This document shows positions 6,379-59,373 of a stretch of DNA of 64,000 nt, one piece after another. The notes under the pieces are model-generated. The model was given only the letters and a program-made list of their open reading frames with translations, had not been told where the DNA came from and did no database searches. The translations under genes and the position numbers were made by a program. The stretch is from Macrostomum lignano. Its lineage: Eukaryota. The stretch covers positions 310,001 through 374,000 of the forward strand of contig NIVC01000031.1 of assembly GCA_002269645.1 (NCBI GenBank), read 5' to 3'. Positions within the stretch are counted from its first letter, which is position 1. Every line of letters begins with the position of its first letter.

Positions 6379-6379
6379 C

Positions 6380-6414
<35 letters not shown>

Positions 6415-6415
6415 C

Positions 6416-6468
<53 letters not shown>

Positions 6469-6469
6469 C

Positions 6470-6546
<77 letters not shown>

Positions 6547-6609
6547 TATTGATAGATAGACAGATAGATAGATAGATAGATAGATAGATATATAGATAGA
6601 TAGACAGAC

Positions 6610-6649
<40 letters not shown>

Positions 6650-13598: not shown

Positions 13599-13649
<51 letters not shown>

Positions 13650-13660
13650 GTCTCTCTCTC

Positions 13661-13749
<89 letters not shown>

Positions 13750-15689: not shown

Positions 15690-16124
15690 AGAAATCCTTG
15701 GTTTCTTGTGCAATATTTATGACTAAAATATGGTTTTTAATGTTCCCAAATCTTTCTTTTGCACTGTAAAATTTGTATTCAGCTCTTTTTCTGTCTGAAT
15801 GCGTTTCTGCTTTTTTTCTGATCTTGTTAACTCTGATATATGTTTAAGAGGGTGTCAGAATTTTCAATTCTATATCATAGCGATTTTGTGTCTATATTGT
15901 ATTGTGTACAAAATTATACTCGCTTGGCTCATTGAAACCTTGCGCGCGTTTTTTTCTCTGGATCGCCAGTCATTAATTTTCTATAATTAGACAATCTCTA
16001 TTTGATGACGAGTTTTTGTCATTTTTTATTGACTGTTTTATTCTAAACAATCTGTCCGATCAGTGACTGCGGGCTTGAGACACCACCTGTGTGCCTGCTG
16101 ATCCCCCCCCCCCGGATACACTTG

Positions 16125-16910: not shown

Positions 16911-17164
16911 GCCTATCCCATTTTACATGTCAACCTTCTCTCCCCCCCTCCATACCTTTTCTCCCCGATCTCCACTATTTATCTCTTCCTCTCTCGGGTC
17001 AAAGTCAAATCCCCTTCTTATCTTCGTGTGAGTTATTATTGCAGTATTTTCTTTGTAGATGCGACGGGAAATGGGGCCCAGTCCTCCAGGCTGCAATTTA
17101 ACTGCCGAAAGATTTAGATTCGGGTCAGTGTTGGGGTTTTAAAGAAAGTTTTATACAGTATTAG

Positions 17165-17462: not shown

Positions 17463-17856
17463 ACAAGCCCGCTGTAGTAATAAAATCCTATTGGATGATT
17501 GATTAGGCATCTTTATCTTTATCTACGAGCTACATATGTATTTGATACTGTGTAAAGCAAGACTTGCGTGTGAACATTTAGGTTGAGCAATATTCGAAAA
17601 TGCTGTTTTTTCAAACTGGATAAACAATTTTAATGGAGTACGCAGTCAGAGCAGTGTGCAATGGCGGAATGAGAGCTCGGCTCACCTGAGATGCTTGATC
17701 TCATGCCGCCGCCACCTACTCAGAAACTGGCTTGTTTGCTGTTGTATTCAAACTAAGATCTGTGTTAGTTTAATAAGGTATTGTGCGAGTAATCAGTGAC
17801 GTACGCGTGGAATTTAATTTTAGGGGCTTTGCAACCTTAAAGTTTGACAAGATTAG

Positions 17857-18683
17857 GTCTCTTGGTTGGCGCCCCTGTCTCTTGGTGGGCGCCTCTGTCT
17901 CTTGGTGGGCGCCACTGTCTCTTGGTTGGCGTCCCTGTCTCTTGGTGGGCGCCCCCGTCTCTTGCTGGGCGCCCCTGTCTCTTGGTGGGCGCCCCCGTCT
18001 CTTGCTGGGCGCCCCTGTCTCTTGGTGGGCGCCCCTGTCTCTTGGTGGGCGCCTCTGTCTCTTGGTGGGCGCCTCTGTCTCTTGGTGGGCGCCCCTGTCT
18101 CTTGGTGGGCGCCTCTGTCTCTTGGTGGGCGCCCCTGTCTCTTGGTGGGCGCCCCTGTCTCTTGGTGGGCGCCTCTGTCTCTTGGTGGGCGCCCCTGTCT
18201 CTTGGTGGGCGCCCCTGTCTCTTGGTGGGCGCCCCTGTCTCTTGGTGGGCGCCCCTGTCTCTTGGTGGGCACCTCTGTCTCTTGGTGGGCGCCCCTGTCT
18301 CTTGGTGGGCGCCCCTGTCTCTTGGTGGGCGCCCCTGTCTCTTGGTTGGCGCCCCTGTCTCTTGGTGGGCGTCCCTGTCTCTTGGTGGGCGTCCCTGTCT
18401 CTTGGTTGGCGCCCCTGTCTCTTGGTGGGTGCCTCTGTCTCTTGGTGGGCGCCCCTGTCTCTTGGTGGGCGCCCCTGTCTCTTGGTGGGCGCCCCTGTCT
18501 CTTGGCTGGCGCCCCTGTCTCTTGGTTGGCGTCCCTGTCTCTTGGTGGGCGCCCCTGTCTCTTGGTTGGCGTCCCTGTCTGTTGGTGGGCGCCCCTGTCT
18601 CTTGGTTGGCTCCCCTGTCTCTTGGTTGGCTCACCTGTCTCTTGGTTGGCGCCCCTGTCTCTTGGTTGGCGCCCCTGTCTCTT
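17857..18683. repeat. 20-bp minisatellite (GTCTCTTGGTGGGCGCCCCT)n
   Basis: About 41 copies, flanked by GATTAG at 17851-17856 and 18684-18689. Confidence 0.97.
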
Positions 18684-18992
18684 GATTAGCGTCCTTTACA
18701 GTACTCCTGTATCTTAAGACCCGTGGATGCCAAATCCAAGAGATGTCCAAGTGAGCTTCTATCATACTTTAAGCATGATTGCCAAACTTTCATTTAGTCT
18801 CTATAGGGGGTGATGGAGGGGTCGCGACCCTAATGGCCTTCCTCTGCGTGCGCCACTAAGCTTAGTCATTGTATTTATCCGATGAGGTCAGGTGGCCATA
18901 AACTGAACTTGCAGGTTGTGAGAAAATCTAAGGCCAGAGGCGAGACAAACTTTTGTGTCGGAGTAAGAAACACGGATTTGGAGGGGGACAGA

Positions 18993-19678: not shown

Positions 19679-20036
19679 AGGTCTGCTTTTTTGCTTTTTG
19701 CTTCCTGAAAAGCAAAATTTTTCGTGGAGTTCTAAATGCAGGCGCAAATTAAGTGAAAAATTTAAATAAAAGTTTGATGCCGCTATTGCAATAACAAATC
19801 CGTTTTTAAGCGTGAATAGTTTTTGTACGTAATAAATGTTTCTAAAATTAGAAACAGTTATACGTCTTACAATTTTCAGTAGTAGTCTTTTCTCCGACAA
19901 TACAGCTGAGTCACACACGGCCTGTTCGCAAAGCACTGCTCCGCTACGCCCTAATTAGGTGAAGTGGCTTCGGCATTTACTGTTGGTTGTCCAATTACCC
20001 GTCTTAAGCAACCCTACACTGTTTCGCACTGGCGGC

Positions 20037-20630
20037 ACCCAAATTGACTCTCCTGACACCCAACTTGTCTCTCTCCTGACACCCAACTTGTCTCTCTCCT
20101 GACACCCAACTTGTCTCTCTCCTGATACCCAACTTGACTCTCTCCTGACACCCAACTTGTCTCTGTCCTGACACCCAACTTGACTTTCCTGACACCCAAC
20201 TTGTCTGTCTCCTGACACCCAACTTGTCTCTCTCCTGACACCCAACTTGCCTCTCTTCTGACACCAACTTGTCTCTGTCCTGACACCCAGCTTGACTCTC
20301 TCCTGACACCCACCTTGCTCTGTCCTGACACCCAACTTGCCTCTCTCCTGACACCCAACTTGTCGCTCTCCTGACACCCAACTTGTCGCTCTCCTGACAC
20401 CCAACTTGTCTCTGTCCTGACACCCAACTTGTCTCTGTCCTGACACCCAACTTGACTTTCCTGACACCCAACTTGTCTGTCTCCTGACACCCAACTTGTC
20501 TCTCTCCTGACACCCAACTTGCCTCTCTCCTGACACCCAACTTGACTTTCCTGACACCCAACTTGACTCTCTCATGACACCCAACTTGTCTCTCTCCTGA
20601 CACCCAACTTGACTCTCTCCTGACACCCAC
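20037..20630. repeat. ~23-bp minisatellite (CCTGACACCCAACTTGTCTCTCT)n
   Basis: About 26 copies with small indels. Confidence 0.95.
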
Positions 20631-21514
20631 CTTGTCTTTGTCTGACAAGCAGCAACGCAGATCACGATAGCTACATGCAAGGTGGATCCGTAAAGTACAG
20701 ATCAAAAGAGACATTTTATCAAGCTTATTAAACTGCTCAAAGCTTCTTTAAAGTGCTTTGGTCAATTAAAGGACTGCTCTATTTCTACTCAGCCATCATT
20801 TTTGTCAGTTTGGTCCATTTCAGCTGTAAGAGTGCCGTATAGTGAAGAATAGAAAAGAAAAATAGCTTTTTAGTCTGAAGCTTACACTGCACAAACACAA
20901 TGTCCACATTGCACACACCATTGACGATCTGGAATGCAAATTCTCAAGCAGAAACCCCCCACCACCACATACACTCGCATCTATTGTCCATTTCTGCGTC
21001 TGTCTATCTCATTCTTTCTCTGTTTTTCTTGATCGCTTCATCTTACTCGCTGCTCGGGTTTGGAGTATGACAAACTGGCTTTGGTTAATTGGCTTGGGGG
21101 GGGGGGCAGCCATTTTTCTGCTTAACCTTTTATATAGTTATAACTGAGAGCTGAAAACTCAGGCCAAACACCCGAGCCTTGCAGCTCGTTATGCTGTGCG
21201 CATTTACTCTGCACATCTTCTCACAAACTGAATTCATTTTATTAGAGGATTGCTAAATCTATGCAGAGAGAATTATGGGCCCCTGCATTCATCAGTTAAC
21301 GACTGTTTGGCTGACTTCTATTGCCACCTGCTGCGATATTGGAGGTGAGACTGGCAGGTTTAATTCAGTATTCACGACTCTGAGAATGTCAAGGTCACGG
21401 CTTAGCTAGCGTTCACAAAATAATATATTATCGAGGTCACAGTCTCATTCACAGATTTCTAGGTCGCACTTTAATTCACGGAATCATAGCATAAATCACA
21501 CTTCCGTTCACGGT

Positions 21515-40610: not shown

Positions 40611-40905
40611 TCATGATACTTTTGAAAACAATGGCCAGCTTCATTGAATGCCCAGGCCTTCTTCGTCAGATCTGCCTTCCCCACACTGTTGTGTGCACTG
40701 CACTGAGACGTGAGGCTCAAAAATGACCTGATATTCACCGCCTCGTTGCAAGCAAGATCTTTGAATTGCTTTTATCATTTCTTATATTCTTATATTTCTT
40801 ATATTTTTATCATTTCTGGGTCTTTCTAGGAAGCTAGATTTATAATAACTGACGCAAATGGTCCTTGTCACGACTGTCTTTGGGGCTGTCTGTGAGGCTA
40901 TCTGT

Positions 40906-41418
40906 GGGTCACGGCAAATCAGGACACAGCGGGTCACGGCAAGTCAGGACACAGCGGGTCACGGCAAGTCAGGACACAGCGGGTCACGGCAAATCAGGAC
41001 ACAGCGGGTCACGGCAAGTCAGGACACAGCGGGTCACGGCAAGTCAGGACACAGCGGGTCACGGCAAGTCAGGACACAGCGGGTCACGGCAAGTCAGGAC
41101 ACAGCGGGTCACGGCAAGTCAGGACACAGCGGGTCACGGCAAGTCAGGACACAGCGGGTCACGGCAAATCAGGACACAGCGGGTCACGGCAAGTCAGGAC
41201 ACAGCGGGTCACGGCAAGTCAGGACACAGCGGGTCACGGCAAGTCAGGACACAGCGGGTCACGGCAAGTCAGGACACAGCGGGTCACGGCAAGTCAGGAC
41301 ACAGCGGGTCACAGCAAGTCAGGACACAGCGGGTCACGGCAAGTCAGGACACAGCGGGTCACGGCAAGTCAGGACACAGCGGGTCACGGCAAGTCAGGAC
41401 ACAGCGGGTCACGGCAAG
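40906..41418. repeat. 25-bp minisatellite (GGGTCACGGCAAGTCAGGACACAGC)n
   Basis: About 20 near-perfect copies. Confidence 0.97.
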
Positions 41419-42660
41419 CCAAGCGGTGGCTGTATATTTAACTGAGAACTCTTGAGTAAGCACTGGACTTCCTGCTCCAACAGTTGCTAATAAAAAGTCA
41501 GTCCAAAAATCAAATACAAAAATCAGAGCCGGAAAAAGCGCCAAACCGGTGGCTGAAAAATGTGAAAAATTCTCGGCAACAGAAAATCTGGAGTAGACAT
41601 TGAGCAGTCTGAGCAGATTGGGGAAATTGTGATTGGCTTTGTGCCAGAGTTTCAAAATCAACATTGATCAGCTTAAAACTGAAGTAGCACTCGAGTCAGC
41701 ACAAAAATGTCTCATTGATTAAAAGGAGCAACCGGTAAAACAAACTCGGCAGTCAAAAAAAATTAAATCGGGGCCGAATAATAAAAACTGGCAGGAAAGT
41801 TGATTACACAAAGGATGTAATTAGATAAAGAAACAAGGCAACCGGTTAAACAAAATGGACGCAAGTATCATGAAATTTTTTGTCAAAAAGTAAGCCTCTG
41901 AGGTTCAGGTTTAAGTTAAGCTCCGCTAAAACAAGAAACAGGCCACCAAGTCTTATAAAAGTTGGGTTCCAAAAATATTTGAATTTTCACTGCCGACAAC
42001 TGCCCAACGCCATTGCAGTTTAAGGATAAACAAATGATTAATGCCTCAGGTTCATTGGAAGACCCAATTGATATGCTGATCAGCTCAGATCCGCTCCCTC
42101 ACAGCCCGTCGCTCTCGCAGTCACGATGAGGCACTCAGGAAGCTGTGCCGCAGCAGCTCCGCGGTGTCCGCTCGCTTCCTCGGGTCATAGTCTACGCACC
42201 TGAGGTAGAAGTCCTTCAGGCCGGCTGAGAACCCGTCCGCAATCCGAGGCATCTCCTGCCTTCTATCCCTCAGAATGCCAATATTTACACTTGGCTGGTT
42301 CCTATCAGGAGGCTGCATGGCCGTCATCTCAAACACGGTGCAGCCGAAGGCCCACACGTCGGTCTTGGCTGAGTACGGAATCGAGTCACCCTCGCCCATG
42401 AACAGCTCCGGAGCCATGAAGTAGGTGGTGCCTTTCGGTCCAAAGCCTGTGCTCAGATCGCAGCTCTTCCCGACCTCCTTGGCCAAACCGAAGTCGATCA
42501 GCTTGATGACGCCCTCGTTAGTGAGCATCACGTTGTTGCAGTTCACATCGCGGTGCAGGATGGTGCCGTCTGGGTGGCAGTGCAGGAACTTCAGGCCTGA
42601 GCAGATCTGCAAATTGAGCAGTTTTGAGCAGTCATGAGAGTGCATCTATCCATTCTGGAT

Positions 42661-42912
42661 CCCACCCACACTGACCTGATCTCACACTGATCCCACACTG
42701 TATCCTATGTCTGATCCCACACTGATCCCACACTAATCTCACACTGATCTCACACTGATCCCACGCTGATCCCACACTGATCCCACACTGATCCCACACT
42801 GATCCCACATTGATCCCACACTAATCCCACACTGATCCCACACTGATCCCACACTGATCCCAAACTCATCCCACACTCATCCCACACTCATCCCACACTC
42901 ATCCCACACTCA
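42661..42912. repeat. 11-bp minisatellite (CCCACACTGAT)n in a kinase intron
   Basis: About 22 copies. Confidence 0.93.
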
Positions 42913-43626
42913 CCCCACCCATGCCAGGCAATGCCACAGAACCCAAAGACGCACCTGTCTGGAGAAGTCCCTGACCCCGGACTCCTTGAACGGCTTTTTC
43001 TGACGCTCCATCAGCTCAAAGAGGCTGTGACCCGAGACCAGCTCGGTGAAGATGTACAGCCCATCCGACTTCTGCTCGCACTTGAGGAACTGCAGAATGT
43101 TGGGATGCGAGAGTCGCTTGAGGATCTCAACTCCCCGCTTCTCCATCTCGACGGCTTTCTGCAGCTTCCCCGATTGGCCGGTGCCGCTCAGGGGCAGCAC
43201 CTTGACAGCCACCGTCTGGTTGCGGTCTGTGAGGGCCTTGTACACCTCACCGAATCCGCCACGGCCGATGAGCTGCTTCTTGTTGTCCTGTAGGATGAAG
43301 TCCCAGTCAGTGAAGCTGGGGTCCAGCTGCTTCTTGGTGCTGGAAATGAGGTGAAGGAGTTCGATAAATATTGTCTTGCTTGGGGGCGCTATGAGGAGGT
43401 TGGGGGCGCCATGAGGAGGTTGTGGCATTATGGGGAGCTGCCCTGACAAATTTGTGACGCCCTCGCTTGACTGCGGCGCTGCCGAGAATTTCAGGGCGCC
43501 GATCATCAAAGCGCAATGAATTTTCGGCTAAAATGGGGTCCAGTTGCTTTTTGGCGCTAGAAAACTTGAGTTGAAGGAATTCGTTGAATTTTGTGTTGCT
43601 TGGGGCTTTCTGAGTATTTTGGGACT

Positions 43627-43790
43627 CACCACCCTTCTGCGTCACCACCCTTCTGCGTCACCACCCTTCTGCGTCACCACCCTTCTGCGTCACCACCCTT
43701 CTGCGTCACCACCCTTCTGCGTCACCACCCTTCTGCGTCACCACCCTTCTGCGTCACCACCCTTCTGCGTCACCACCCTTCTGCGTCACC
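43627..43790. repeat. 16-bp minisatellite (CACCACCCTTCTGCGT)n
   Basis: About 10 perfect copies; the same family occurs at 52289-52503. Confidence 0.95.
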
Positions 43791-44059
43791 AACAGCCGGC
43801 GCCACACATTTACAGCGCGGACTCACCGAGTCTCCTCAGGCAGTCCCCCCTCGGACGGCCCAGGCGGCCTGACGCGCTCCCGAGCTCGCGGGCGGGGACG
43901 CGGAGCTGAAGCGCTGTGGGAAGCGATGAGGCGAGTGACTCCCAAATATGGGTTTTTGCGAGTGAGCCCGTTAAATATATCTGGGTCGCTATGGCAGCAC
44001 TTGAACTCTGCCAATGCTTTGTCTGCCTGCCTGACTGCCTGCAAATGGAACTCTGGGTG

Positions 44060-44310
44060 GCGCCATGGGGAGATCGGGAGCGTCAAGGGGAGGTTGGGGG
44101 GCGCCATGAGGAGGTTGGGGACGCCATGAGGAGGTTGGGGACGCCATGAGGAGGTTGGGGGCGCTATGAGGAGGTTGGGGGCGCCATGAGGAGGTTGGGG
44201 GCGCCATGGGGAGATTTCAAGAGCTGCCCTGAAAATCCGTGACGCCCTCGCTTGACTGCGGCGCTGCTGAGAATTTCAGGGCGCCGATCATCAAAGCGCA
44301 ATGAATTTTC
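44060..44310. repeat. 19-bp repeat (GGGGCGCCATGAGGAGGTT) plus ~90-bp block, duplicated at 43380-43525
   Basis: GAGCTGCCCTGA...GTGACGCCCTCGCTTGACTGCGGCGCTG.GAGAATTTCAGGGCGCCGATCATCAAAGCGCAATGAATTTTC is present in two adjacent introns. Confidence 0.85.
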
Positions 44311-46277
44311 GCCAAACAATATTTTCAGTATTTTTAGTGTCAGGCAGCAGTTCTCAGTCAGAACTCACCCAGCTGAGGCGGCAGGCGGCGCTGAGCTGCC
44401 AGCGGGAGGCCGAGAGGCTTCGAGCCGCCGCTGCGTGGAAGAAATCCAGGCCCGCTTTGCTGACTGGGCTGTGCGGCACCAATCAATCTCAACAACATCA
44501 ACCGGTGTTTCGCCATCTTTGTTCTTCAAGCTGAACATTTTGGCTCCGATTTGGTAAAAAATGAACTGAAGAGAGTCGACTGGCTGATGCTTAGCGGCCA
44601 AATGGACGGCGGTGTCACCTTCTTTGTCAGGAACTGTGAGACAGTCGCTGCCGAGCTCCTTCACCAGCCACTTCAGATTTGAATTGTCAGACTTCAGAGC
44701 AGCAAAGTGAAATGCTGTTCTATCCCACAGTCCTCCTTTCAGCCGAAAGCAGTCAGTTCCGATCTGTCTCTTGATCCACTCCAGCGACTCGATGCCCTGA
44801 TGCTGAGCGGCCAAATGGACGGCCGTGACACCGTCTTCGTCAGGAACTGTGAGACAGTCGCTGCCGAGCTCCTTCACCAGCCACTTCAGATTTGAATTGT
44901 CAGGCTTCTCAACAGCATAGTGAAATGCTGATCTATTTCAAAACCCCTTCAGCCGAAAGCATTTAGTTCCGATCTGTCTCTTGATCCACTCCAGCGAGTC
45001 GATGCCCTGAAAAAGAGCAGCTAAATGGACGGCCGTGTCACCGTCCTTGTCAGGAAATGTGAGCCAGTTGCTGCCGAGCTCCTTCACCAGCCACTTTAGA
45101 CAAGATTCGCTTTTTCTGTTCATAGCGGCAAAGTGAGCGACTGTCTGTTCCAATCTATCGACAATTGTCAAACTGCCTCTGCCTCCCCTCTGTTTAACCA
45201 GCTCCATCCAAGATTCGTCCTGATGCAGGGCTGCCAAGTGCACTAGAGTCTCACCATCACCCCTATTATTTCTTTGTGTCAGACAGCCGGATCCGAATCT
45301 GTCAATTAGCAGCTTCAGGCACGACAATCTCACCGGCTTGCAGGCCACGTGATGGGCCAGCGGCATTTTGCGACGCTCTTCAAAGGGAAAATCTTGCCTG
45401 TCGAACGCGCCCACCTCCAGCCAGCTGTTGCTGCCGACTTTACCGCACAGTCGTTGCAGCTCCTCGCTGTCTCCAGCCTCCAGCGCCGCTCTCAGCTTTC
45501 GCTCCATCTCCATGGATACACTCCCAGTGTTTCCCATTGCCGGCTTCTCCTAGCAGCGCTTCTCTGCTGATTTGCTGTCTGCCGCAGCTGTTCCACACGG
45601 CTTTAAACTGAGTGCTTTGCTCTTCTTCAAGCGAATTTGCCCTGCCAGCTCAGCAGCAGCAGCAAAAGTCCCGCTGTCACGGACTGAAATCTCTGAGCTC
45701 TCCCTGTGCAGAGAAATTTGTTTAAATGGACTGAGGCCGATTCTCTTCTCTGACCCAGTGGCTGTGTTTGAGGCCTGATTGGGTGCCAGGGGGTCCGGCA
45801 GCTGCTCTGCTCAGCGGGTGAGAGATGCAGGAGCAGTGAGATGCTGCGAGCTCTGCTGAGTTAAACAATGAGAGCTGACTGTGGCTGCTGCGTGCTCGGC
45901 ATAGCAAGTGCAAATTGTTTTTAGAATGCAGTAGGCATGAGAGAAGAGAGAAGAATGGAAGATATGTATTGCAGAGAGGACTTAAATAGGCTTTAATGCT
46001 AGCACAAACTTAAAGCTAGCTCGTATAGCTATGGGTTGTTAATCATGAGCAACGTAGTATAGGACGCTGGACGATCGCTGGTTGTGAAATGCATCATCGA
46101 GGTGGGAATCCTATATACTAAAAATGAAAATCTTGCTTGCTTGCTTGTAATCGAATATTGACCATATTTCGCCTTTAAAGTGCAGCAACAGTTTTGACTT
46201 AGGCAAGGACTTTTTAATCAGTTAAATAATCTTGTATTGTGAAGCAAGTGGTTTATCTGACAGAAGTCCTTGAGCAA

Positions 46278-49200
46278 CTTGACTTACTTGACTTAGCTGC
46301 AGGGCGGTCCGAAGACGCAGCGGGGAGGCGAGCGTCGCCCATTCCGCTAATCCCTGAAAGACCCGCATAGGCTAGGGCGCGGGGCCGGTCAGGGAGGTCT
46401 GCCGGTCCTGTCTGCAGCGTTGTCTTCGGTGGGGAAGACGGAGGCTCGCTTGGTGGCCCGGAGGAACCGGATGAGCCGTGGGATGTTCTCGGGCCGGCAA
46501 ACGTCGTCCAGGGACGGGTTGGGCCCGAGGTGGTTGAGCCGGTCTCGGTTGAAGGCCGGGCAGTAGCAGACGAAGTGCTTGGCATCTTCGTTCTCGAGGT
46601 TGCAGTAAGGGCAGAGTTCGCTCCGGCGGGCACTTCGGAGGAAACAATGCCTGGCAAAGCAACCGTGACCTGTGAAGGTCATAGTGAGAGCGCGGATATC
46701 TTTTCGATTTTGGTTCAAAAGGATTCTCCGCAGCTTGAGGGACGGATTGGGCACTGCCGCACGGGATTGGCGGCAGTTGGAAATGCCATCCCATCTGCGT
46801 AGATGCAGGACGTCCGCCCAATCGTTAATCTTACGATTAATGACCGTGGCGGGGATTGGGGCCAGGGGCACGGGGCCAAGGAGCGAGCCAGAACTACCCG
46901 CCTTGGCGAGGGAGTCGGCGAGCTCGTTACCTTTGAACCCAGCGTGTCCTGGGATCCACGTGAGCCGGACGGTGTTCCTCCGAGCCAGCTTGTTGAGCTG
47001 CCCGATACAGTCGCGGACTGTTCGGGAGTTCGTAGTGGTGTGACACAGGGCCTGCAAAGCGGCCTGGCTGTCAGAGTGGAAGAAGATTTTTCTGTCCTTG
47101 AAGTCCCTGCAGTGGAGCTCAGCTGCACACGAGCTGATGGCAAGGAGTTCATTCTGGAAGACGCTGGAGAGTCTGCCAGTGTGTTCGGCGTGAGTAGCGA
47201 TCACGCGGCCATTGATAAGGATGAAGACTCCAAAGCCGGATAAACCGTCTTTGGAGGATCCATCAGTGAAGCAGTGAACCTCCTGAGGGGCCCAGCTGTC
47301 GTTGGCGTTCTCCCTGGAAGGGATAGTGACCCCAAAGTGTTGGTGGAGATTTAGGAAGCGCGGCTTAGCGTCCGAAAGGACAGCCGCACTCCCTCTCTCC
47401 TCCAGAACTTTAAGGCACAGGTCAGAGTGCGGCAGGAGCATGCGCTTCGCCATCGCTCTTTGTGGCTTGAAACTAACACCAGTCTCGATGAGCCGGCTGG
47501 TGGTTTTAGCAGCCTCGGGACGGACAAAGATGTCCAGAGGCGGGAGGCAAAAAAAGGCGTTGAGGCCGTCAAAGGGAGCAGAGAGCGGGGCATTCAGGAT
47601 CATGCGGCACGCACGTCCCTGCACCTTTTTGAGGGCTTCGTGGCAGGTTTTAATCTGCAGGGCGCTGGTCCAGATCAGCCCGGCGTAAGTAACGGCCGGT
47701 CGGACCATTGCGGTATAGATCCACCAGAGCCGCTTCGGGGTGAGGCCCCAGGTGGTGCCGACGGCTCTGCGCAGCTTCGCAAAGATCGCGAGGGCTTTTT
47801 TGGTCTTGGCCTGAACGTGGGTAGACCAGCTCAGCCGGTGGTCCAGCGTAACGCCGAGACACTTGGTTTTTTTGCAGGATGGGATTTCCACCCCGTAAAG
47901 CTTCAGTGGGCGAATACGCCAGTTTACCCTGCTGGTGAACATGATTACGACAGTTTTGGTCTCAGAGAGCCTGAGGCCGCACCTGTCCGCCCATTGTTCA
48001 GCAGAGTGAATAAAGTTTTGCAGAAGATCCCTAAGGGTTTCGGGTGACGGTCCGGATGCCACGGCTGTGACATCATCGGCGTAACCGACCTTAAGGATGG
48101 GGTCAAGATGGCTGTCCTGGAGGAGCTCATCGATGACCATGTTCCAGAGAACTGGAGAGAGGACATCGCCCTGGGGGCTGCCTTTGCAGACGGTTACCGT
48201 CCGTTAGTGGCCCAACAGGTGTGCGGTGGCAGTACGGTGGCTGATCATATACATGATCCACCGGGTGAGGTGCGAGTGGGTTCCTCTAGCACGTAGAGCT
48301 CTGTCAAAAGCCTCAAAGAGGACATTATCAAAGGCTCCAACAATGTCGAGGAAGACAGCGAGAGCGTAGCCATTGCCAAGAACGGCTTTCTCCAGCATGT
48401 CAACCAAACCGTGAAGCGCGCTCTCCGTGGACCTGCCTGCCCAAAAGGCGTGCTGGCTCTCACTGAGCGGCTTGTTCTTCAGTTCCACAGAGAGGAGGCG
48501 CCAGAGCACCAGTCTCTCTAACAGCTTCACCAGTGAGGAGGTGAGGCTAATTGGTCTGAAGGATTTAATGGACCGGTAGTCTGGTCGGCCGGGCTTGGGG
48601 ATAAAGACCACCTTGGCCTCGGTCCAGGGTTTCGGAACAAAGCCGAGAACAAGCAAGCTTTCAGAAGCCGGCAAAGGTTTCGCAGGAAACCGGCCCAATT
48701 CACCGCCTCCCGCAGGAAGGCTGGCACAACGCCGTCCGGTCCTGGGGATTTGAAGGGTTTGAAGGAGGAGACTGCTGTAGTAACGCGGTCCTCCGAGATG
48801 ATTGAGTCAGCCAGTACGTGTCCGCCCACTGAGTGATCAGGGGGGTCGGGCCTGGCTGGCTCGTTCGGGAAAAACGCTGTCAGCATCGCTTCCTGTGTTT
48901 CTCCTGGATTCTCAGTGAGTGAGCCGTCGGCTCTCTTGACTGAGGAGAGTTTGGACATTTTGTCCAGGGTGAGGGCTTTAACGATTCTGGAGGTGGGGCG
49001 GGAGCCCTCAAGTTCCTCACAGTATTCGCGCCACTTGTTGGTTTTGGCGTTCCTAACCTGCCTCTTGAACTCGTGGATAGAGTTCAGGTAGGCGGTTTGG
49101 TCGGCCGGGTTTTTAGTTTTTTGGGCCCTACGGTGAAGCCTTTTGGCTCTGCGACGGAGGTCGCCAAGCTGCGGGTTCCACCATGGGGCCGACTGTTTGC

Positions 49201-50458
49201 CTTTATATGCCTTTAGGGGCATGAGGCTTCGAAGGCAGCAGTGAGCGAGTCCGTAAGTGCGGCCGCAAATTCATCTGCTTCCTCGCAGGTGTTGATGGAG
49301 ACTGGAGTGCTAGTGCAACGATAGGTCTCCTCCAGGGCAAGCCTGAAGGCGGTCCAGTCGGTATTCCTAGCATTCCGTTTCCAGTAAAGCTGGCCTGCGT
49401 TTCGGGCGCTGGCCAGCGTGAAGGAGATGAACTTGTGATCGGAGAGGGACGCCTCAGGGAGCACCCGCCACTCCCTAGTGCTCTGGAAGAGCCTGGGCGT
49501 GGTGAGGGTGGCATCCAGCACCTCCGATTGGCATCCGTTATTGAAGGTAGGGGTACTACCCGAGTTACAGAACTCAAGGGTTGTAGTAGCAATATAATCC
49601 AGGAAGTCTTCACCTCTCTGGTTTATATCAGAACTGCCCCAGTGGGTGTGGTGGGCATTGATGTCGCCTGCCACAAGCAGCTCATAATTTCTGGTGGAGC
49701 AGAGCTCGACCAGTGTGACAAGCTCTACTGGGATCATCTCGCCGACGCCCGGTAGGTAAACCGAGGCGATGAGGGTAGTCCTCCCAGGGAGTATGTCTTC
49801 AGACTGGATGACACAGATGTCCCTGGTGGACAGGTCCGATCTGAGCCATTCGTTAATAGAACTGGACACCATGATGCAGGATCTTGGTGCCAGGTTTCCC
49901 TCCCGGGTGTCAGCGGTTAAACACTGGTAGCCGGTGGGGACATGTTGGGGACTGCCCCTTAGCGTCCAAGGTTCCTGGATAAGGATAATCCCTGGCGTGT
50001 ATTGGTCAGTGTGCTTCAAGAGGTTGACTGAAGCAGCAATGCTGTGCTGCAGGTTGACCTGCAAGCAGTGGATGCCCTGGGAGAAAGTCATGTCTACTGT
50101 CCAGGGGAGGAGAAGAGCAACTCATTCTCAGCCTCATCGGTGAGAGTTGAGTCGCCAATTTCCATTGGCTCAGGCTCAGCCGCCTCCCCAGCCGCCGCGG
50201 AGGCGGACACGGCGCCCACGGCAGGTGAGTCACCTAGCCGCGCTACACCGCCCTCCTCCCCAGCGACTGGGGTACGGCTGCTGCCTTCGCCTTGCGCCCC
50301 GCCGTCGGGAGACTGAGCTCGGCCGGCAGCGTCCTCCTGGTGGTAATCCCACCAGTTGGAAGGCTGAGCCGTGCCGTCGTTCAGTTCCCTCGGCTGGCTT
50401 TCAGTGTCTTTGCGAGCGGCACGAGTCTGCTCGAGGTGAAGTCTCAGAGACCCCCAAC
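46278..50458 (-). mobile_element. Non-LTR retrotransposon (APE-RT-RNase H-CCHC; LOA/R1-group-like), 5'-truncated in probable ORF1, ORF2 disrupted
   Basis: ORF2 starts at 50091: QVNLQH..ILIQEPW..GDINAH..SDH (APE), YRSIKSFRPISL, PQGDVLSP, YADD (RT), FTDGS, ELLAI, SDSQAAL, WIPGH.G..GNELAD (RNase H), CPYC...H...C. There are two frameshifts (~49220, ~48660) and one in-frame TAA (48204). The 3' tail is (TAAGTCAAG)2. Confidence 0.92.
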
Positions 50459-51699
50459 TCTCAACCACATCAGCCGGTGTTTCTCCCTTGTTGTTCTTCA
50501 AGCTGAACATTTTGGCTCCGATTTGGTAAAAAATGAACTGAAGAGAGTCGACTGGCTGATGCTTAGCGGCCAAATGGACGGCCGTGTCACCTTCTTTGTC
50601 AGGAACTGTGAGACAGTCGTTGCCGAGCTCCTTCACCAGCCACTTCAGATTTAAATTGTCAGACTTCTGAGCAGCAAAGTGAAATGCTGCTCGATTCTGA
50701 AATTCTTCCTTTCAGCCGAAAGCAGTCAGTTCCGATCTGTCTCTTGATCCACTCCAGCGACTCGATGCCCTGATGCTGAGCGGCCAAATGGACGGCCGTG
50801 ACACCGTCTTCGTCAGGAACTGTGAGACAGTCGCTGCCGAGCTCCTTCACCAGCCACTTCAGATTTAAATTGTCAGACTTCTGAGCAGCAAAGTGAAATG
50901 CTGCTCGATTCTGAAATTCTTCCTTCAGCCGAAAGCAGTCAGTTCCGATCTGTCTCTTGATCCACTCCAGCGACTCGATGCCCTGATGCTGAGCGGCCAA
51001 ATGGACGGCCGTGACACCGTCTTCGTCAGGAACTGTGAGACAGTCGCTGCCGAGCTCCTTCACCAGCCACTTCAGATTTGAATTGTCAGACTTCTGAGCA
51101 GCAAAATGAAATGCTGTTCTATTCCACAGTCCTCCTTTCAGCCGAAAGCAGTCAGTTCCGATCTGTCTCTTGATCCACTCCAGCGACTCGATGCCCTGAT
51201 GCTGAGCGGCCAAATGGACGGCCGTGACACCGTCTTCGTCAGGAACTGTGAGACAGTCGCTGCCGAGCTCCTTCACCAGCCACTTTAGACAAGAACTGCT
51301 TTTTCTGTTCATAGCGGCAAAGTGAGCAACTGTCTTTCTTGATCCATGGACAATTCTCAAGCAGCCACTGCCTCCCTTCTTTTCAACCAGCTTCATCCAA
51401 GATTCGTCCTGATGCTGGGCAGCCAATTGCACTGGAGTCTTATACCTATCACATCTATCTGTCAGACAGCCGGGTCCGAATCTGTCAATCAGCAGCTCCA
51501 GGCACGACGAACTCACCGGCTTGCAGACCACGTGATGGACCAGCGGCATTCGAAGCTCTTCAGAGGGAAAGTCTTGCGTGTCGAAGCCGCCCACCTCCAG
51601 CTTGATGTTGCTGCCGACTTTACCGCACAATCGCTGCAGCTCCTCGCTGTCTCCAGCCTCCAGCGCCGCTCTCAGCTTCCGCTCCATCTGTGTTGCCAT
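50459..51699 (-). pseudogene. Ankyrin-repeat paralog 2 (starts MATQMERK), truncated after ...ETPADVVE and joined to the LINE
   Basis: High nucleotide similarity to 44480-45750. It has three 213-bp double-ANK units, a 1-nt frameshift near 50712, and no kinase exons. Confidence 0.85.
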
Positions 51700-52288
51700 G
51701 GCTACACTGCTTCTCCTAGCAGCGCTTCTCTGCCGATCTGCTGTCTGCCGCAGCTGTTCCACACGGCTTCAAGCTGAGTGCTTTGCTCTTCTTCAAGCGA
51801 ATTCGCCTGCCAGCTCAGCAGCAGCAGCAAAAGTCCCGCTGTCACAGACTGAAATCTCGGAGCTCTCCCTGTGCAGAGAAATTTGTTTAAATGGACTGAA
51901 GCCGATTCTCTTCTTTATCTTCAAGATCAGCTGTATAGGTTAGTTCAACTTTGACGCACTTGTATTAGGGAGACAGAGGGCAGTGTAAAACGATAGCGCA
52001 GTTGGTCGATATGTCGATGTGGAGCAGCGCCGCTGTACGATAAGCGGAGTTCTAAATAAGATAAGCGGGAGAGTAGCCTTATCAGTCTTTCCCAGGGAGA
52101 GTGTGCTTGGTTTTTAGTTCGTTCTGGCTCGCAGCCGAAAAGAAAGTCTTTTATTGCGCGGACTCAGTTTATTGCATAAATCTTCAAAACAGTCCACGGC
52201 GCCCTCCAAAGTCCGAAACCGCGTGTAACTCGCGTCTCTGATAAGGTATAAAATCTACCCTGTTTTCTATATATTCTGGGTCTTTAAT

Positions 52289-52503
52289 GTCACCACCCTT
52301 CTGCGTCACCACCCTTCTGTGTCACCACCCTTCTGCGTCACCACCCTTCTGCGTCACCACCCTTCTGCGTCACCACCCTTCTGCGTCACCACCTTTCTGC
52401 GTCACCACCCTTCTGCGTCACCACCCTTCTGCGTCACCACCCTTCTGCGTCACCACCCTTCTGCGTCACCACCCTTCTGCGTCACCACCTTCTGCGTCAC
52501 CAC
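52289..52503. repeat. 16-bp minisatellite (CACCACCCTTCTGCGT)n, second array
   Basis: About 13 copies. Confidence 0.95.
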
Positions 52504-53032
52504 ACTTCTGCTTTGATGGCTCTGTACGCAAGTTATCGAGGTGCTACTATCAGACCAAAGCAAGGCAAGGGTGTATGGAGCATCAAATACATTCAAATGA
52601 CACAGTAGAGCAGTTCAAGGATGCTGAAAAACCCGTACGAGTCCGTCGACCACAGAGACGATGCATGATGCAGAAAAATCAGCCAGGAAGGTGTATCCAG
52701 GAAGTTCGCAGCAGGCTGCAATTCCTAGTTAAAGTGGATGGCTACTCAGGCTGCTGGATAAACGTCAGGAACTTCGAACAAAACGCTTCGGTTCACAAGC
52801 TTATCAATGCGTGCTGTGACCTATTTTGTCCGATAGAAGTACCGGAATCGTTCTAGTCAGACTCGGGCCTCAGTTCAGAGCCAACGCCTTTGTCAATTTT
52901 CTGAAGAGCTGGGGGGAGTTGAGTCAAGAGTCTCATATTGCCTGACTATCACCAAAGCAATGGAAGGGCGGAATCTGCAGTTAATTCTGCTTAGAATATT
53001 ATCAGAGGATGTTGCCCATACAGCAGCCTGGC

Positions 53033-53161
53033 CTTGACTTAGCTGCAGGGGGCGTCCGGCGGATGCAGCGAGGAGGCGGAGGAGACCGCCCATTCCGCTA
53101 GAAAAAAATATGGAACGCTTCACGAATTTGCGTGTCATCCTTGCGCAGGGCCATGCTAATA

Positions 53162-53192
<31 letters not shown>

Positions 53193-53209
53193 ACTTCCGA
53201 AGCAAGTAC
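53033..53209 (-). mobile_element. U6 snRNA-LINE 3' end chimeric retrocopy
   Basis: U6 (53209-53102) is followed by 69 bp homologous to LINE 46287-46349. Perfect 12-bp TSD CAGCAGCCTGGC at 53021-53032 and 53210-53221. Confidence 0.92.
53102..53209 (-). ncRNA. RNU6: Full-length U6 snRNA copy (retro-pseudogene)
   Basis: GTACTTGCTTCGGAAGTACATATACTAAAATTGGAACGATACAGAGAATATTAGCATGGCCCTGCGCAAGGATGACACGCAAATTCGTGAAGCGTTCCATATTTTTTT. The ACAGAGA box and AGC triad are intact; AAGATT is changed to AATATT and one C is lost in GGCCCC relative to the canonical sequence. Confidence 0.97.
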
Positions 53210-54899
53210 CAGCAGCCTGGCTGGTGTTCCCCACGTCTATCGAAGTCGATATCAAATATGTGCTTTATTTTAATTACAGCGACAAATAACGACGTCATAC
53301 GTCGGCTGAACGTCGGTGTATTGTAAAAGTACATGTCTATTATCGACGGCATTGAACGTCGATGATATGCACCAGGCGACTTAAGAATGAATGCATGGAT
53401 CGAGAATTACCAAGACGGACAATCCCAGACCTGAGGATCAAAGGTCACTGGAGAGACCTCGAGTTAATGCCATCTGGAGAAAAATATCCCGCCAGTTCGG
53501 TTTCAGTACAGCCCACTGCTGCAGTCAAATATAATTTGTTTATTTAGTACACAAGGAACAATTATGACTCGTGAAGGGTAGATGGTGCAGATAATGCACT
53601 CGTTCCGTGAGATATCCATGGCCCCGATATAAAGACTAAGTGCTGAGAGGCAGGGCCGGCAAATAATCTAAAAACAACTTGGCTCTCTATCAGAGAGGCC
53701 CATACAATTAGTAAAATGCAGGTGACAACAGCCAGATCTCTTAAAGGACGGAGCTTGATTTGCGCATCAGTTCAGAACTTTTGAGTGCTTGTGATAATTT
53801 TGATCTGTAGTGTAATAGGTACAATATTCCCTACATGTAAACTGAATGACCATTGAATATGATTTAATATACTACTTTCATCTCACCTTTAATTTTATTG
53901 GAACTGTTGATTCAATTTTTTTGTTTGGTACAGTCTGCAATAAAATCAATTGTTTGATTAGTTTGAATTTTTTCAATGGTCTGAAGACAAACCTCATTCA
54001 CACTGTCAAAGCCATCAAATCACATAACCGGATGTACAAACAAATAAAAGTTGATGTACAAGCAAGGACAAGCCCTGGTGTACAAGACGTGAATTTTCAG
54101 TACTTCTAAGTGGATAGTATTTGAGCTGTAGACCGCTTCAGTGAATTCGTATTTATACTTTTTTGGCTGGACCGGCGTATCTATAAAACTGACAAATGGA
54201 TCAAATAAAATACACGAATACGCTAGTACAGCTAAAATACGCACCATAATTGTACTGAGCTTTTATTTGACGCTCTACTGATAGTAGAAATATAAGGAAA
54301 ATAATCTGAGAAAAAATCAATTGATAATATGTTTAATACTTGTATGCTGTCCTACTCAACTAATCAGCCAGCGGGCAGTTCATCAAGAGTAACGGCAGTT
54401 TCTCCGCCACGATAACTCTGAGTAGGCAGCACGCAGCGACAAGGGGGATCCATGCGGTGTTGAAAATCTTGGTAGCGCCACTGCCGTCCTGGCAAAGCTG
54501 CAGAAAACTGGGAATCATTCCCCACGATCAAATTGTAATTGGGGAATTATCAAATTCACTGAAATGGTAGCGATTTGTCAAGCATTATGGTATATTTCAT
54601 GCAATTAAATTATAATTAAATAAATGTACCAGAGAGGTGTGAAAACTTGGTATTACGATTCAAAGAAAGCGACTTGTAAGTTAGAAATTATGGGTAAATA
54701 TTTTAGCAATCATTTTTTGATAGAATTCCTGATATGACAGCTGGATTCTAAAGAACAAGTTGGCAGAAAATAATTGTGAGTACGCTCGTATAAATGGGCA
54801 CGCACTTGTGACTTAACAGAAAGCATTTCATTAAAAATTAAATGGATCTGTATCTTTGTTGCTAAGTCAAAGTCAGAGAATTTTGAATCAAAAAAAGCA

Positions 54900-55900: not shown

Positions 55901-56323
55901 TTTCACATTATCTGCTGCTCATTGATGCACAGGGGCAGAAACCGCATCACATGTCGTTCCCAGGCAAGGCACTTCGCGGCGGAAATTTCCTCTAGTGCAA
56001 CGTAGCCGCAGCGGAAAAGCACCATGAGTCTCCACTGCGTTAGGTTGATGCCATCAGGCGGATAGGCGGACACCTCCAATAGTTGAACAATTGCTGCGGC
56101 AATATTCGCACCACTTAGTCGAGCATCTCTGCCGTGAGTTGCAGCTGCCAGCGATGTCGGACACAATTGCTCCAGAATCTCTGCTGGGTCCTCATTCTGC
56201 AGCACTGAGCCGTCAGCAGCCTCTGAGACAAGCTCAAAGCTGCACTCTCTTCATCAGAACAGTGCGCCAGTGATTGGTATGGGAGACCTGGCTAATTTGT
56301 CTTGCTTTCAGGCGCCTGAAAGC

Positions 56324-56665
56324 TATCATTTAGGCGCCTGAAATCGCCACAAGGTCGCCAGACACCCGAAGACTTGGGCACCATGTGCAGGGGCGATGAC
56401 CAAGGGCTGTTTGACCTGCGCACGATGCCGAACTGCTCCAGTAGTCGGAATTCTTCTTTGGCCACCGCCAGCTTGTCCGGTGGTAGGCGGCGGGGGTGGG
56501 CATGGACCGGCGGGCCGCTGGTCGGGATGTGGTGTTCAACCCCGTGGCGCGGCTGGGCTCGGGGGAAAATCAGCTCGGTGAGGGCAGGGAAATCTGCTAG
56601 CAGCTGGCAATATGGGTCCGCAACAGCGGCTGCGGAGAGCTGCAAACCAGGGCCGGCTCCGTTGT
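56324..56665 (-). mobile_element. Gypsy pol fragment (start of RT)
   Basis: HHIPTSGPPVHAHPRRLPPDKLAVAKEEF...SPWSSPLHMVPK...WRPCGDFRRLN, truncated at both ends. Confidence 0.88.
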
Positions 56666-59373
56666 CTCTTCGTGCTCTCGGTCGTCGCTGGCTGTCTCGT
56701 CGTGCTCTCGGTCGTCGCTGGCTGTCTCTTCGTGCTTTCGTTCATCGCTGGCTGTCTCGTCATGCTTTCGTTCATCGCGGGCTGATCTTCGTGTCGTCGT
56801 GTGTCGCCAGCTGGTCTTCGTGTCTTCGTGTCTCGCCGGCTGGTCTGTCGTCGTGTGTCATCGGCTAGTTGAGTTTAGAATTTTTGGGACTGACTATTTT
56901 TTCGATTTCACTGTTTGATAACAACGTTACCATTGATACTCAGTTTCACTCACTATTTTGATACTAACTGTTTGCGTAGATTTATCGTTTTTCATTTTTT
57001 CGCTATTTTTTCTTCTCGTCTTGGTCTTTTCTGCCGTGCTGAATGGAAGATCTAAAAAAGGATCGGGCAGTTTTGCGTCGTGCAGTGTCGTTGCTGGTTG
57101 ACAAGGTACAGCTTGTGGTGGCCGCATCAGGTGCTGGAAGTTCGGAAGATGAGATGCAGAGTCTGTTAAACGTGCTGAGTCTGAAGAGGTCCGAGTTGTA
57201 CCAAATTGATCAACAAATCGCTCGGTTTTTCGTTGACGAAAATGGAGAAGAAAGTGACAAGCTTCAAGAGGAAGTTGAACGAAGTAATGGCTACATGCTG
57301 AAACTGGAAGGAGCTGCTACGGGGCTGAAGAGGCTGCTGGACCGTCTTGCTGAATCGAGGAGTCGCGCGGCTTTAGCGTCACAAACGGCTGGTTCTGCTG
57401 GGTCGAGTCGTTGCAACGTAAAGCTGCCAAAACTCACTCTGCCAATATTCGATGGTAGCGATGCAACTCAGTGGCCGGAATTCAGCGGCCAATTCGATGC
57501 TGCCGTTCACAAGAACGACTGCCTATCAGATGTTGAGAAGTTCAGTTACCTCTTGGGTTGCTTGCGTGGTGAAGCTCGGCGTTGCGTCGACAACCTTCAG
57601 CTGACAGGACAAGACTATCATACTTCATGGGAGTTACTCGTAGATCGGTACGGCTCAAAAGAAAATTTAGTCCAACACTTTATGAAGAAGCTAGAAGCCG
57701 TGAAGTGTCCTTCCGACTCTACCCAATCGCTTCGAGCCTTCATTGGAGTTGATGGCTGCGAACGAGCTTGCTCAAGCCCTCGACGAAGTCCGCGCTGAAT
57801 ATCCGCATGGCTTCATCACCTGCTGGAGCGACAGCAGGGACGTTTTGTGGTGGCTCAAGTCGACACAAATTGTGGAAGCCATTCATTCAAAACAGAGTTT
57901 CCAACATTCGAACAGCTGTGGCACCGGAGAAGTGGCGGTTCTGCCCTGGGAGGGACAACCCCGCAGACATTGCGACCCGACCAGTCGTGCCAGGCGCATT
58001 CGATTCATCGTCCCCTTGGTTTCGGGGTCCTGAGTGGCTGTCTCTGGATTCCTCGCTCTGGCCGGAGCAACCTGTGATAGGCGACCAAAGCTCAAATCAT
58101 CGAGAAGATGCACACAGCTGCGCAGTCACACAGACGTCAACGTCAGAGGTACAATCGGCACGCATCCACTCCATCATCGAGGTGCAGCGCTACAATTCCT
58201 TGACTAGATTGCTGCGGGTCTCAGCGTGGGTTCTCCGTTTCATCAGCATTTTAAAACGGACGCGGCAGGCTACGACTGTCGAGCTGACGTCGGCAGAGCT
58301 GTTAAAATCGGAGGAGTTCTGGATTAAATCGCTGCAGTCGCGTGACTTCGAAGCCGACATTCGCAGTCTTCGCGACAGCACTGCCTGCACGCAGCTTAAC
58401 AAGAACCTCTCGCTTTTCTTGGACTCGAAAGGTGTTCTTCGTTGCGCAGGAAGGCTTGGAGACACTCAGCTTTCTGACGACACAAAGTCTCCGATTCTCT
58501 GCCCATTAGACCCCAGCTTCCAGACACTGCTCATCACGGATGCGCATCACAAAGTCGGTCATGGGGGAGCCTCCGCGACGTTAGTCCAACTTCGTGAGCG
58601 ATTCTGGCTACTGAAAGGGCGACAGAAGGTAAAATCTGTGCTCAAATCATGCAACACATGCATTCGATTGCAAGGGTTGCCGTACCATATTGCACAACCA
58701 GCACAGCTGCCGGCATCCCGTGTTACGGCGTGTCGTGCGTTCCAGCATGTTGGCCTCGATTACTGCGGCCCCCTCATCTACCGCAGGGGGGAGGATGACG
58801 GCCAACATAAAGCCTACATTCTATTGTTGACCTGTACTAGCACACGAGCAGTGCATCCCGAACTCGTCACTGACTTGACAACGCAGTCATTCCTTCTGAG
58901 CCTGAGACGCTTCTGTGCCCGCCGAGGTGTACCATCGATTATCTCTGACAACTTCAAAACCTTCCATGCGGCGGCCAGGCTACTGGATGCAGAAGAAGCT
59001 CCATTGCGGACTCAAGCAGGTCAAGATTTTCTGAGCAGCCGCCGAGTCACCTGGACATTCATTCCCGAGCGAGCTCCATGGATAGGAGGCTTCTACGAGA
59101 GGCTGGTCGGCGTAGTGAAATCAGTGCACAAGAAGACAATCGGAAGGGCATTCCTGACCGTCGAGGAGCTGTCGATAGTAATCTGTGAGACGGAAGCGGT
59201 TGTAAACTCAAGACCGCTTGGCTTTGTGTCTTCCGGCGAGCAATCAGAAGTCATCACACCTGGTCATTTCCTCGTTCTGCGCCGCCTGAAAAAGAACCAG
59301 AGGACGAAGCGGAAGTTTCAATGGTCCTGCCGCTTCCTGAAAGGCTCCGAAAGTCCAGACATTTGCTGAACAA

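Follow-up and report, generated by a model that had tools for sequence, protein, structure and literature searches.

In mammals, insertion of the long interspersed nuclear element (LINE) L1 reportedly deletes sequence at the target, and recombination between L1 copies is said to cause deletions as well (work attributed to Gilbert in 2002, Symer in 2002, and Han in 2005 and 2008). Chimeric retrogenes of U6 and L1 are likewise said to have been described by Buzdin in 2002. The anatomy of U6-LINE chimeras is known from mammalian L1 (PMC4476161, Doucet 2015; PMC6789731, Moldovan 2019), the MGL chimeras of Magnaporthe (MINE, or WEIRD-MGL) carry WEIRD RNA, not U6 (PMC2104539), and chimeras of an mRNA 5' exon with LINE-1, together with 5' transductions that co-opt a promoter, have been described in humans (Law and Burns 2025, PMC11838501). 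LINE chimeras described so far are recognised by direct repeats of 10-20 nucleotides (nt) (PMC2104539, PMC11838501). Here we analyse a stretch of 64,000 nt from the flatworm Macrostomum lignano (contig NIVC01000031.1, hereafter the window), in which the ankyrin-repeat part of an ankyrin-kinase gene, paralog 2, runs directly into a LINE, and a second member of the gene family, paralog 1, serves as reference. From the sequence, we propose with modest confidence that paralog 2 lost its 3' part in association with the LINE, either at integration or by later LINE-LINE recombination; so read, the locus is a fossil of LINE-mediated gene truncation.

Like the L1 target and recombination deletions of mammals, the locus combines a 5'-truncated LINE with the lack of a target-site duplication, the part of the host gene that lay 3' of the junction is lost in full, and the two flanks of the element are not contiguous. 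Unlike them, it lies in a flatworm and involves a non-L1 LINE that has RNase H and ends in short repeats instead of poly(A). The human mRNA-exon::L1 chimeras (PMC11838501) are only superficially similar. In both, a host 5' part lies in sense at the LINE 5' end, and a host promoter could in principle drive the element. The human cases, however, have duplications of ~15 bp, mostly near-full-length L1 and often joins at splice donors, whereas the junction in the window has no duplication, its LINE is truncated deep in the first open reading frame (ORF1), the join falls in mid-exon and both parts are broken.

The ankyrin exon and the tail that follows it

All features of the paralog 2::LINE locus are on the minus strand (Table 1), the LINE lying head-to-tail with paralog 2. 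Paralog 2 matches paralog 1 from 51914 to 50459 (45749-44487 in paralog 1; blastn and alignment), and the match stops at GTTGAGA, corresponding to ETP(A/V)DVVE. From there the ankyrin frame stays open for 121 codons without a stop (SWGSLRLHLEQ...LLFSSPGQ, 50459-50097), closes with TAG (50096-50094) and, after AC (50093-50092), gives way to the ATG at 50091 that opens ORF2 of the LINE. The order of segments given in the original prediction is right base for base.

The break lies inside the ankyrin exon and not at a splice site, because the exon in paralog 1 and in the proteins P0004 and P0015 runs 40 codons beyond it to an intron. Specifically, all three read on past the break point with ...RSAKRAWISSTQRRLEASRPPAG...SAG up to the GTGAGT donor, and P0004 and P0015 continue the ankyrin exon differently from the tail (...RSAKRAWISSTQRRLEASRPPAGSS...). 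The donor end of this exon in paralog 1 is confirmed by P0004, an annotated M. lignano protein with which paralog 1 is 100% identical across both splice junctions. Missing from paralog 2 are the remaining 120 nt of the exon, the introns and the kinase exons. At the other end, the homology of the paralogs stops sharply at 51914 (45749 in paralog 1), 207 nt before the ATG, and the next 376 nt upstream of paralog 2 (51915-52290) are unique within the window. Over the reliably aligned first 1.2 kb the paralogs form a mosaic of 78-100% identity, a pattern that suits long-established members of the family undergoing gene conversion better than a retrocopy made recently.

The identity of the tail is suggested by its one real relative among 1.84 billion representatives (phmmer, E 2.5e-27, residues 356-442), namely P0018 (UniRef100_A0A1I8FVG9), an M. 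lignano protein of 3,935 amino acids (aa) named 'RNase H domain-containing protein'. By tblastn, residues 356-420 of P0018 match window positions 50450-50259 with 89% identity over 65 aa, and a wider blastp alignment of the two gives 69% over 95 residues. At least three LINE copies, from two related families, are concatenated in the gene model of P0018, along with other repeats. The LINE family of the window is represented there, because the 3' part of the window ORF2, as far as 46292, shares 90-100% identity with residues 1991-2497; residues 982-1829 form a related endonuclease and reverse transcriptase (RT) element with 45-61% identity to that of the window. Immediately before the segment resembling the tail, P0018 has a domain at residues 76-344; its homologue within the model is residues 636-913 (34% identity, E 9e-36), and the latter adjoin, upstream, the endonuclease (988-1164) and RT of the second element. 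Because the segment follows an ORF1 core in P0018 and precedes ORF2 by 2 nt in the window, the evidence supports the tail as the C-terminal region of LINE ORF1 and not host sequence. This agrees with the original prediction, which had taken a tail of ~120 aa for ORF1, and the different continuation of the exon in P0004 and P0015 is in line with it. TAG-AC-ATG is the native ORF1/ORF2 junction of the LINE itself. In public databases, A0A1I8FVG9 is thereby exposed as a concatenation of LINE copies.

We also weighed whether the tail might be LINE 5' untranslated region (UTR), or host sequence that happens to be open, which we consider very improbable. The tail matches no Pfam family, has no second copy in the window, contains no cysteine or zinc-knuckle motif, and is low-complexity and acidic in composition; its sole relative is a concatenated gene model. 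Its openness is weak evidence, because 5.6% of its dinucleotide shuffles (65% G+C) are open over 121 codons too. On the other hand, P0018 reads the segment in the same frame after an ORF1-like domain, the tail ends 2 nt before the ORF2 start, the canonical ankyrin exon reads on differently, and of the three sense frames, the one in continuation of the ankyrin frame is alone in being open, the two others having 4 and 7 stops. A word-index protein search with the tail gave no match, a result of little weight since P0018 was missed there. The ORF1 core, encountered only in P0018, matched no Pfam family; a likeness of this core to DUF4780 was considered and dropped, being unsupported by Pfam and given E 0.06 by hhalign.

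The copy in the window is 5'-truncated inside ORF1, with more than 1 kb of ORF1 and the 5' UTR missing, because P0018 residues 1-355, which include the ORF1 core, have no match in the window (tblastn). Between the ankyrin and LINE parts lie 8 nt that match neither the ankyrin paralog nor the LINE relative, and that may be either filler or diverged LINE sequence.

Table 1. Features of the paralog 2::LINE locus and its surroundings, in window positions
Feature	Position	Strand	Basis and remarks
Paralog 2 upstream region and 5' UTR	51700..51914	-	Homologous to paralog 1 45543-45749; blastn, 95.7% identity over 207 nt
Paralog 2 ankyrin-repeat coding region	50459..51699	-	Pfam Ank_2, Ank_4; 213-nt unit x3.4 (TRF); cut within exon at 50459
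Junction piece of 8 nt, GTTGGGGG	50451..50458	-	Outside the paralog alignment (ends 50459) and the tblastn match to P0018 (starts 50450)
Putative C-terminal ORF1 part, ~118 codons plus TAG 50096-50094	50094..50450	-	phmmer, tblastn and blastp to P0018; ORF1 core and 5' UTR absent
LINE ORF2: apurinic/apyrimidinic (AP) endonuclease, RT, RNase H, C-terminal Cys/His motif	46389..50091	-	Pfam
LINE 3' UTR, ending in GCTAAGTCAAG then TAAGTCAAG, without poly(A)	46278..46388	-	Terminus common to the U6 chimera; copy in P0018 matches to 46292
LINE 3' flank, unique, 528 nt	45750..46277	-	blastn, word sizes 9 and 7
Paralog 1, reference ankyrin-kinase gene	42121..45749	-	ORFs, Pfam Ank and Pkinase, match to P0004
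Paralog 1, upstream region and 5' UTR	from ~45749	-	
Paralog 1, ATG	45537	-	
Paralog 1, ankyrin exon donor GG|GTGAGT	~44367	-	
Paralog 1, kinase-domain exons	~43350-42950 and 42606-42121	-	Pfam Pkinase
U6::LINE chimera	53021..53221	-	Rfam U6, LINE 3' match, 12-nt duplication

Flanks of the element and origin of the junction

On the 3' side of the LINE, the 528-nt flank neither resumes the ankyrin exon nor shows similarity to the rest of the ankyrin-kinase gene or to the region downstream of paralog 1 (blastn), in agreement with the original prediction, which had seen that the ankyrin exon does not go on there. No counterpart of this flank was found downstream of paralog 1, where a whole-gene tandem duplication predicts one, although this is uninformative if the paralogs are old. 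A target-site duplication, which the original prediction had also not seen, was sought by k-mer and mismatch-tolerant 14-mer searches. No k-mer of at least 10 nt is shared between 46150-46300 and 50400-52600, and the 14 nt after the LINE end, with as many as 3 mismatches allowed, match nothing close to the two candidate 5' boundaries, namely the ankyrin/LINE junction and the upstream edge of the ankyrin homology (51915+, within 1 kb upstream). Shared matches of 7-9 nt (AATACAAG, located 45-55 nt from both ends, and TTGCTCA, within the ankyrin coding region) were rejected as chance because several 8-mer matches are expected by chance. The ankyrin segment as one long target-site duplication was ruled out by the 528 nt of unique sequence between the LINE and paralog 1.

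Loss of the 3' part of paralog 2 upon LINE insertion would explain every feature by known LINE behaviour, and it fits a large, locally clustered gene family. A nick near 46277, on the downstream side of paralog 2, would have served to prime reverse transcription. With its 5' end the cDNA would then have become linked to a break far upstream, within the ankyrin exon, and the DNA in between would have been deleted, leaving the LINE 5' end attached, with at most 8 nt of filler, to a point inside this exon. By an alternative route, two same-sense LINE copies would have recombined later with the same outcome. The original prediction had offered two origins, an insertion that deleted the kinase exons and a template switch onto ankyrin mRNA; the former is the better supported of the two, and the latter fails the test of a flanking target-site duplication.

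Several points weigh against such a gene loss. Unlike in the mammalian cases, the deletion is deduced from the absence of the rest of the gene. The assignment of the tail to ORF1 depends on one mis-annotated, concatenated gene model (P0018) and not on an intact copy of the family. Additionally, the 3' flank of 528 nt has no counterpart downstream of paralog 1, and a recent whole-gene tandem duplication is not demonstrated. An mRNA-derived copy would likewise show homology that sets in abruptly, as it does here 207 nt before the ATG, a related LINE gave rise to a bona fide RNA chimera at a distance of 2.6 kb, and three of the four coding lesions of the locus are 1-nt indels, two of them in short homopolymer runs, which are possible errors of long-read assembly.

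The points concerning mRNA lead to the most serious rival, a chimera made at the RNA level. Here the RT, while copying LINE RNA, would have switched inside ORF1 to an ankyrin-kinase mRNA and continued to the 5' end of the latter, and the composite cDNA would have integrated 528 nt upstream of paralog 1; in variants, ligation or splicing joined the two RNAs, or transcription from an ankyrin promoter ran on through a LINE located in a different member of the family (5' transduction). In line with this, the ankyrin part is the 5' partner of the LINE in the same orientation and the LINE reaches its terminus, as in chimeric retrogenes, and mRNA-5'-exon::L1 chimeras are known in humans (PMC11838501). 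The homology of the paralogs begins abruptly 207 nt before the ATG, as could an mRNA 5' end, with UTRs 95-97% identical, and both flanks are unique. The copied ankyrin stretch is a single exon in the parent gene, so no intron speaks against an RNA origin. Moreover, 2.6 kb away a related LINE 3' end is part of a U6 chimera that is genuine and has a 12-nt duplication. However, the flanking repeats of 10-20 nt that mark chimeric retrogenes are absent: no duplication was found between 51915+ and positions up to 46277, nor within 1 kb upstream, whereas the neighbouring U6 chimera has a perfect one. The composite must also have landed beside a member of its own parent family. The region shared by the paralogs holds a TTTAAA box and an acceptor-like site (TTTCTCTGCACAG) downstream of the start, and could include promoter or outron DNA, which would be missing from a mature mRNA, and no spliced-leader sequence was found at the 5' homology boundary of paralog 2 (51914). 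All RNA-level variants taken jointly are therefore judged unlikely. The specific version, in which a non-L1 LINE with RNase H jumped within ORF1 onto a locally abundant ankyrin-kinase transcript and integrated without a conventional duplication beside the parent family, we regard as rather improbable. If it were true, the locus would, together with the U6::LINE chimera, point to a LINE family prone to template jumping or RNA ligation.

Relative to LINE-associated gene loss, a DNA rearrangement apart from LINE integration would require two independent events where one suffices. It would have brought the ankyrin segment next to a 5'-truncated LINE that was already there, through non-allelic recombination, a template switch in replication or the breakpoint of a segmental duplication. 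The gene family is large and locally repetitive, with units of 210-213 nt, mosaic identity and patches of 100% suggesting gene conversion, and an intron of paralog 1 holds an internal duplicate of a kinase-exon start. In addition, the junctions lack a duplication and 8 junction nt match neither partner. A breakpoint exactly at the LINE 5' end is, however, the product of LINE integration itself, and neither flank has a second copy in the 64 kb. Such a rearrangement seems improbable to us.

The ankyrin/LINE junction, and possibly the 1-nt indels, could finally be artefacts of long-read assembly in a repeat-rich, partly duplicated genome. The M. lignano genome is a hidden polyploid assembled from PacBio reads (PMC8629364, PMC10468722), and three of the four lesions are single-base indels, two of them in homopolymers (A3 vs A2, C4 vs C5). 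Against this stand the position of the junction, which joins two unrelated unique sequences and does not lie in a shared repeat where collapses happen, and the in-frame TAA of ORF2, which is a substitution and not an indel. We give an assembly artefact hardly any credence; rearrangement and misassembly combined still make an unlikely explanation.

Coding state of the locus and relations of the LINE

The original prediction had the ankyrin gene fused in frame to ORF1, with a host promoter driving the fusion and a downstream pol. The frame is indeed open across the junction, but it is not continuous from the ankyrin ATG at 51699. Specifically, an extra base near 50713-50715 (AAA vs AA in sister units; the prediction had flagged 50712) produces a +1 frameshift ~250 nt upstream of the junction. 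The ankyrin frame from the ATG stops at 50659, and the ORFs are 51762-50659 and 50636-50094, so that as assembled no uninterrupted frame leads from the ankyrin ATG to the ORF1 stop. ORF2 is shifted in frame near 49215-49218, where a run of C4 stands in place of the required C5, and again near 48690 (approximate placement), and it contains the in-frame TAA at 48206-48204. Word-index and phmmer searches found no database protein joining ankyrin repeats to the tail, which is a weak negative. A promoter-driven fusion with a downstream pol is not borne out by a shifted ankyrin frame, an ORF2 with three lesions and the lack of any such annotated protein among those found.

Because of the +1 frameshift in the ankyrin part and the two frameshifts and nonsense codon in ORF2, the locus as assembled appears to have no working mechanism, and both partners are probably pseudogenes. 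The in-frame join of ankyrin and ORF1 is a 1-in-3 accident. Should the 1-nt indels be errors of the assembly, an ankyrin-ORF1p fusion might still be encoded here and translated before ORF2. For annotation, paralog 2 should be described as a LINE-truncated pseudogene, and the open frame of ankyrin plus tail should not be called a new protein. With regard to LINE behaviour, the locus holds nothing new in kind; it is an ordinary transposon-made gene wreck.

The element itself has the organisation of a retrotransposon without long terminal repeats (non-LTR), with an AP-type endonuclease followed by RT in ORF2, ORF1 upstream and a defined, shared 3' terminus. In ORF2, Pfam detects Exo_endo_phos_2 (E 7e-21; the first 292 aa form the AP-endonuclease domain), RVT_1 (E 3e-15) and RNase_H (E 2e-13). 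The solved endonucleases nearest to that of ORF2 are TRAS1 (1WDU, E 8.8e-10) and R1Bm (PDB comparison). With the endonuclease as query, a word-index search gave one match only, an auto-named 'jockey' protein of 30% identity, and a metagenome scan gave one distant LINE (L001, 33% identity), the upstream ORF of which carries DUF4780. The LINE resembles the R1/TRAS, I and Jockey group in having two ORFs with a tight junction between ORF1 stop and ORF2 start, an AP endonuclease whose nearest counterparts are those of TRAS1 and R1Bm, an RT, an RNase H, which the I and LOA lineages have too, and a Cys/His motif at the C-terminus. It differs in that its ORF1 tail lacks CCHC knuckles. Nearest-neighbour hints to its clade are the endonuclease, closest to the R1/TRAS group by its matches to TRAS1 and R1Bm, and the 'jockey' protein.

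The 3' terminus GCTAAGTCAAG is common to the 4.2-kb copy described here (46297-46287, with one extra TAAGTCAAG to 46278) and to the U6 chimera (53043-53033). From the locus one can thereby read the native ORF1/ORF2 junction (TAG-AC-ATG) of a Macrostomum LINE family together with its 3' terminus (GCTAAGTCAAG repeats); the family is undescribed as far as a literature search on non-LTR retrotransposons in M. lignano showed. Another M. lignano locus of 20.8 kb (L002) is unrelated and contains no copy of this LINE.

The U6::LINE chimera and other features of the window

The second chimera near paralog 2 consists of a full-length U6 small nuclear RNA copy (53209-53104) with its T-run (Rfam, 104.8 bits, model positions 1-105), in which one base is missing from the conserved CAUGGCCCCUG stretch. 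After the T-run follows CTAGCGGAATGGG...GCTAAGTCAAG, the last 68 nt of a related LINE 3' UTR (53100-53033), which is 81% identical over 68 nt to 46349-46287 of the window LINE. A perfect 12-nt target-site duplication, CAGCAGCCTGGC (plus strand), stands at 53021-53032 and 53210-53221; this sequence occurs exactly twice in the window vs 0.02 expected. The LINE terminus GCTAAGTCAAG abuts the duplication, fixing the LINE 3' end. The U6::LINE chimera is genuine, and the LINE group can mobilise chimeric RNA. Its origin may lie in template switching; alternatively, RtcB may have ligated U6 to the LINE RNA, with reverse transcription following (PMC6789731).

The segment repeats the anatomy of U6/L1 retrogenes, a class considered here together with the Magnaporthe MINE chimeras: it has a full-length U6 with its U-run, then a LINE 3' fragment reaching the terminus, and a 12-nt direct repeat flanks the whole. 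It differs from U6/L1 retrogenes in its partner, which is a non-L1 LINE without poly(A). The ankyrin::LINE junction, in contrast to both kinds of known chimera, has no direct repeats, and the U6 chimera does not show the same origin for it. Of the idea that one LINE family made two chimeras with a template-jumping RT, the U6 chimera itself stands, with its 12-nt duplication; template jumping at the ankyrin junction is not supported. No report of U6-LINE chimeras in Platyhelminthes was found in the literature search, which targeted non-LTR retrotransposons in M. lignano. As a by-product of the analysis the U6::LINE chimera is more interesting than the ankyrin junction, since an anatomy documented for mammalian L1 is thereby extended to a flatworm LINE that is not an L1 and has no poly(A).

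Upstream of paralog 2, about 230 nt away and on the opposite strand, 52144-52178 (+) matches the M. lignano spliced leader CGGTCTCTTACTGCGAAGACTCAATTTATTGCATG (from PMC8629364) at 27 of 35 bases, with no GTAAG donor after it. This stretch could be a decayed copy of a spliced-leader RNA gene or the 5' end of a retrocopied trans-spliced mRNA. A 16-nt minisatellite, TCACCACCCTTCTGCG, occurs in two places, upstream of paralog 2 (52289-52511, 14 copies) and in an intron of paralog 1 (43626-43791, 10 copies). Matches inside each array are 96-100% and identity between the arrays is 98-99%, while the flanks of the two are unrelated; the minisatellite may be either a dispersed satellite or the remnant of a third gene copy.

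Paralog 1, though the reference here, has an in-frame TGA at 44940-44938 (-) where sister repeats have TGG (GGLW vs GF*N), and the public gene model P0004 begins downstream of it. Paralog 1 could be a pseudogene as well, or start farther downstream. In its intron, the start of the first kinase exon recurs as a duplicate of 88% identity (44155-44311 vs 43380-43526), and there is a 20-nt repeat in 8 copies (TGGGGGCGCCATGAGGAGGT, 44054-44213), which is found at the real kinase exon too. When the last kinase exon was used as query in a protein search, the matches were nearly all Macrostomum lignano proteins.

Elsewhere in the window, 57043-59369 (+) and 56292-56645 (-) hold the remnant of a BEL/Pao-like LTR retroelement, whose gag ORF (DUF1759, E 8e-23) runs directly into an ORF with an integrase zinc-binding domain (E 2e-11). 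Between the gag and integrase parts no protease or RT domain was seen, so the element has undergone an internal deletion or rearrangement. Long low-complexity tandem arrays occupy 6200-7100, 13000-13900, 16000-17100, 17800-18700, 19900-20700 and 40850-41450; they yield spurious long ORFs on both strands and are typical of the repeat-rich M. lignano genome.

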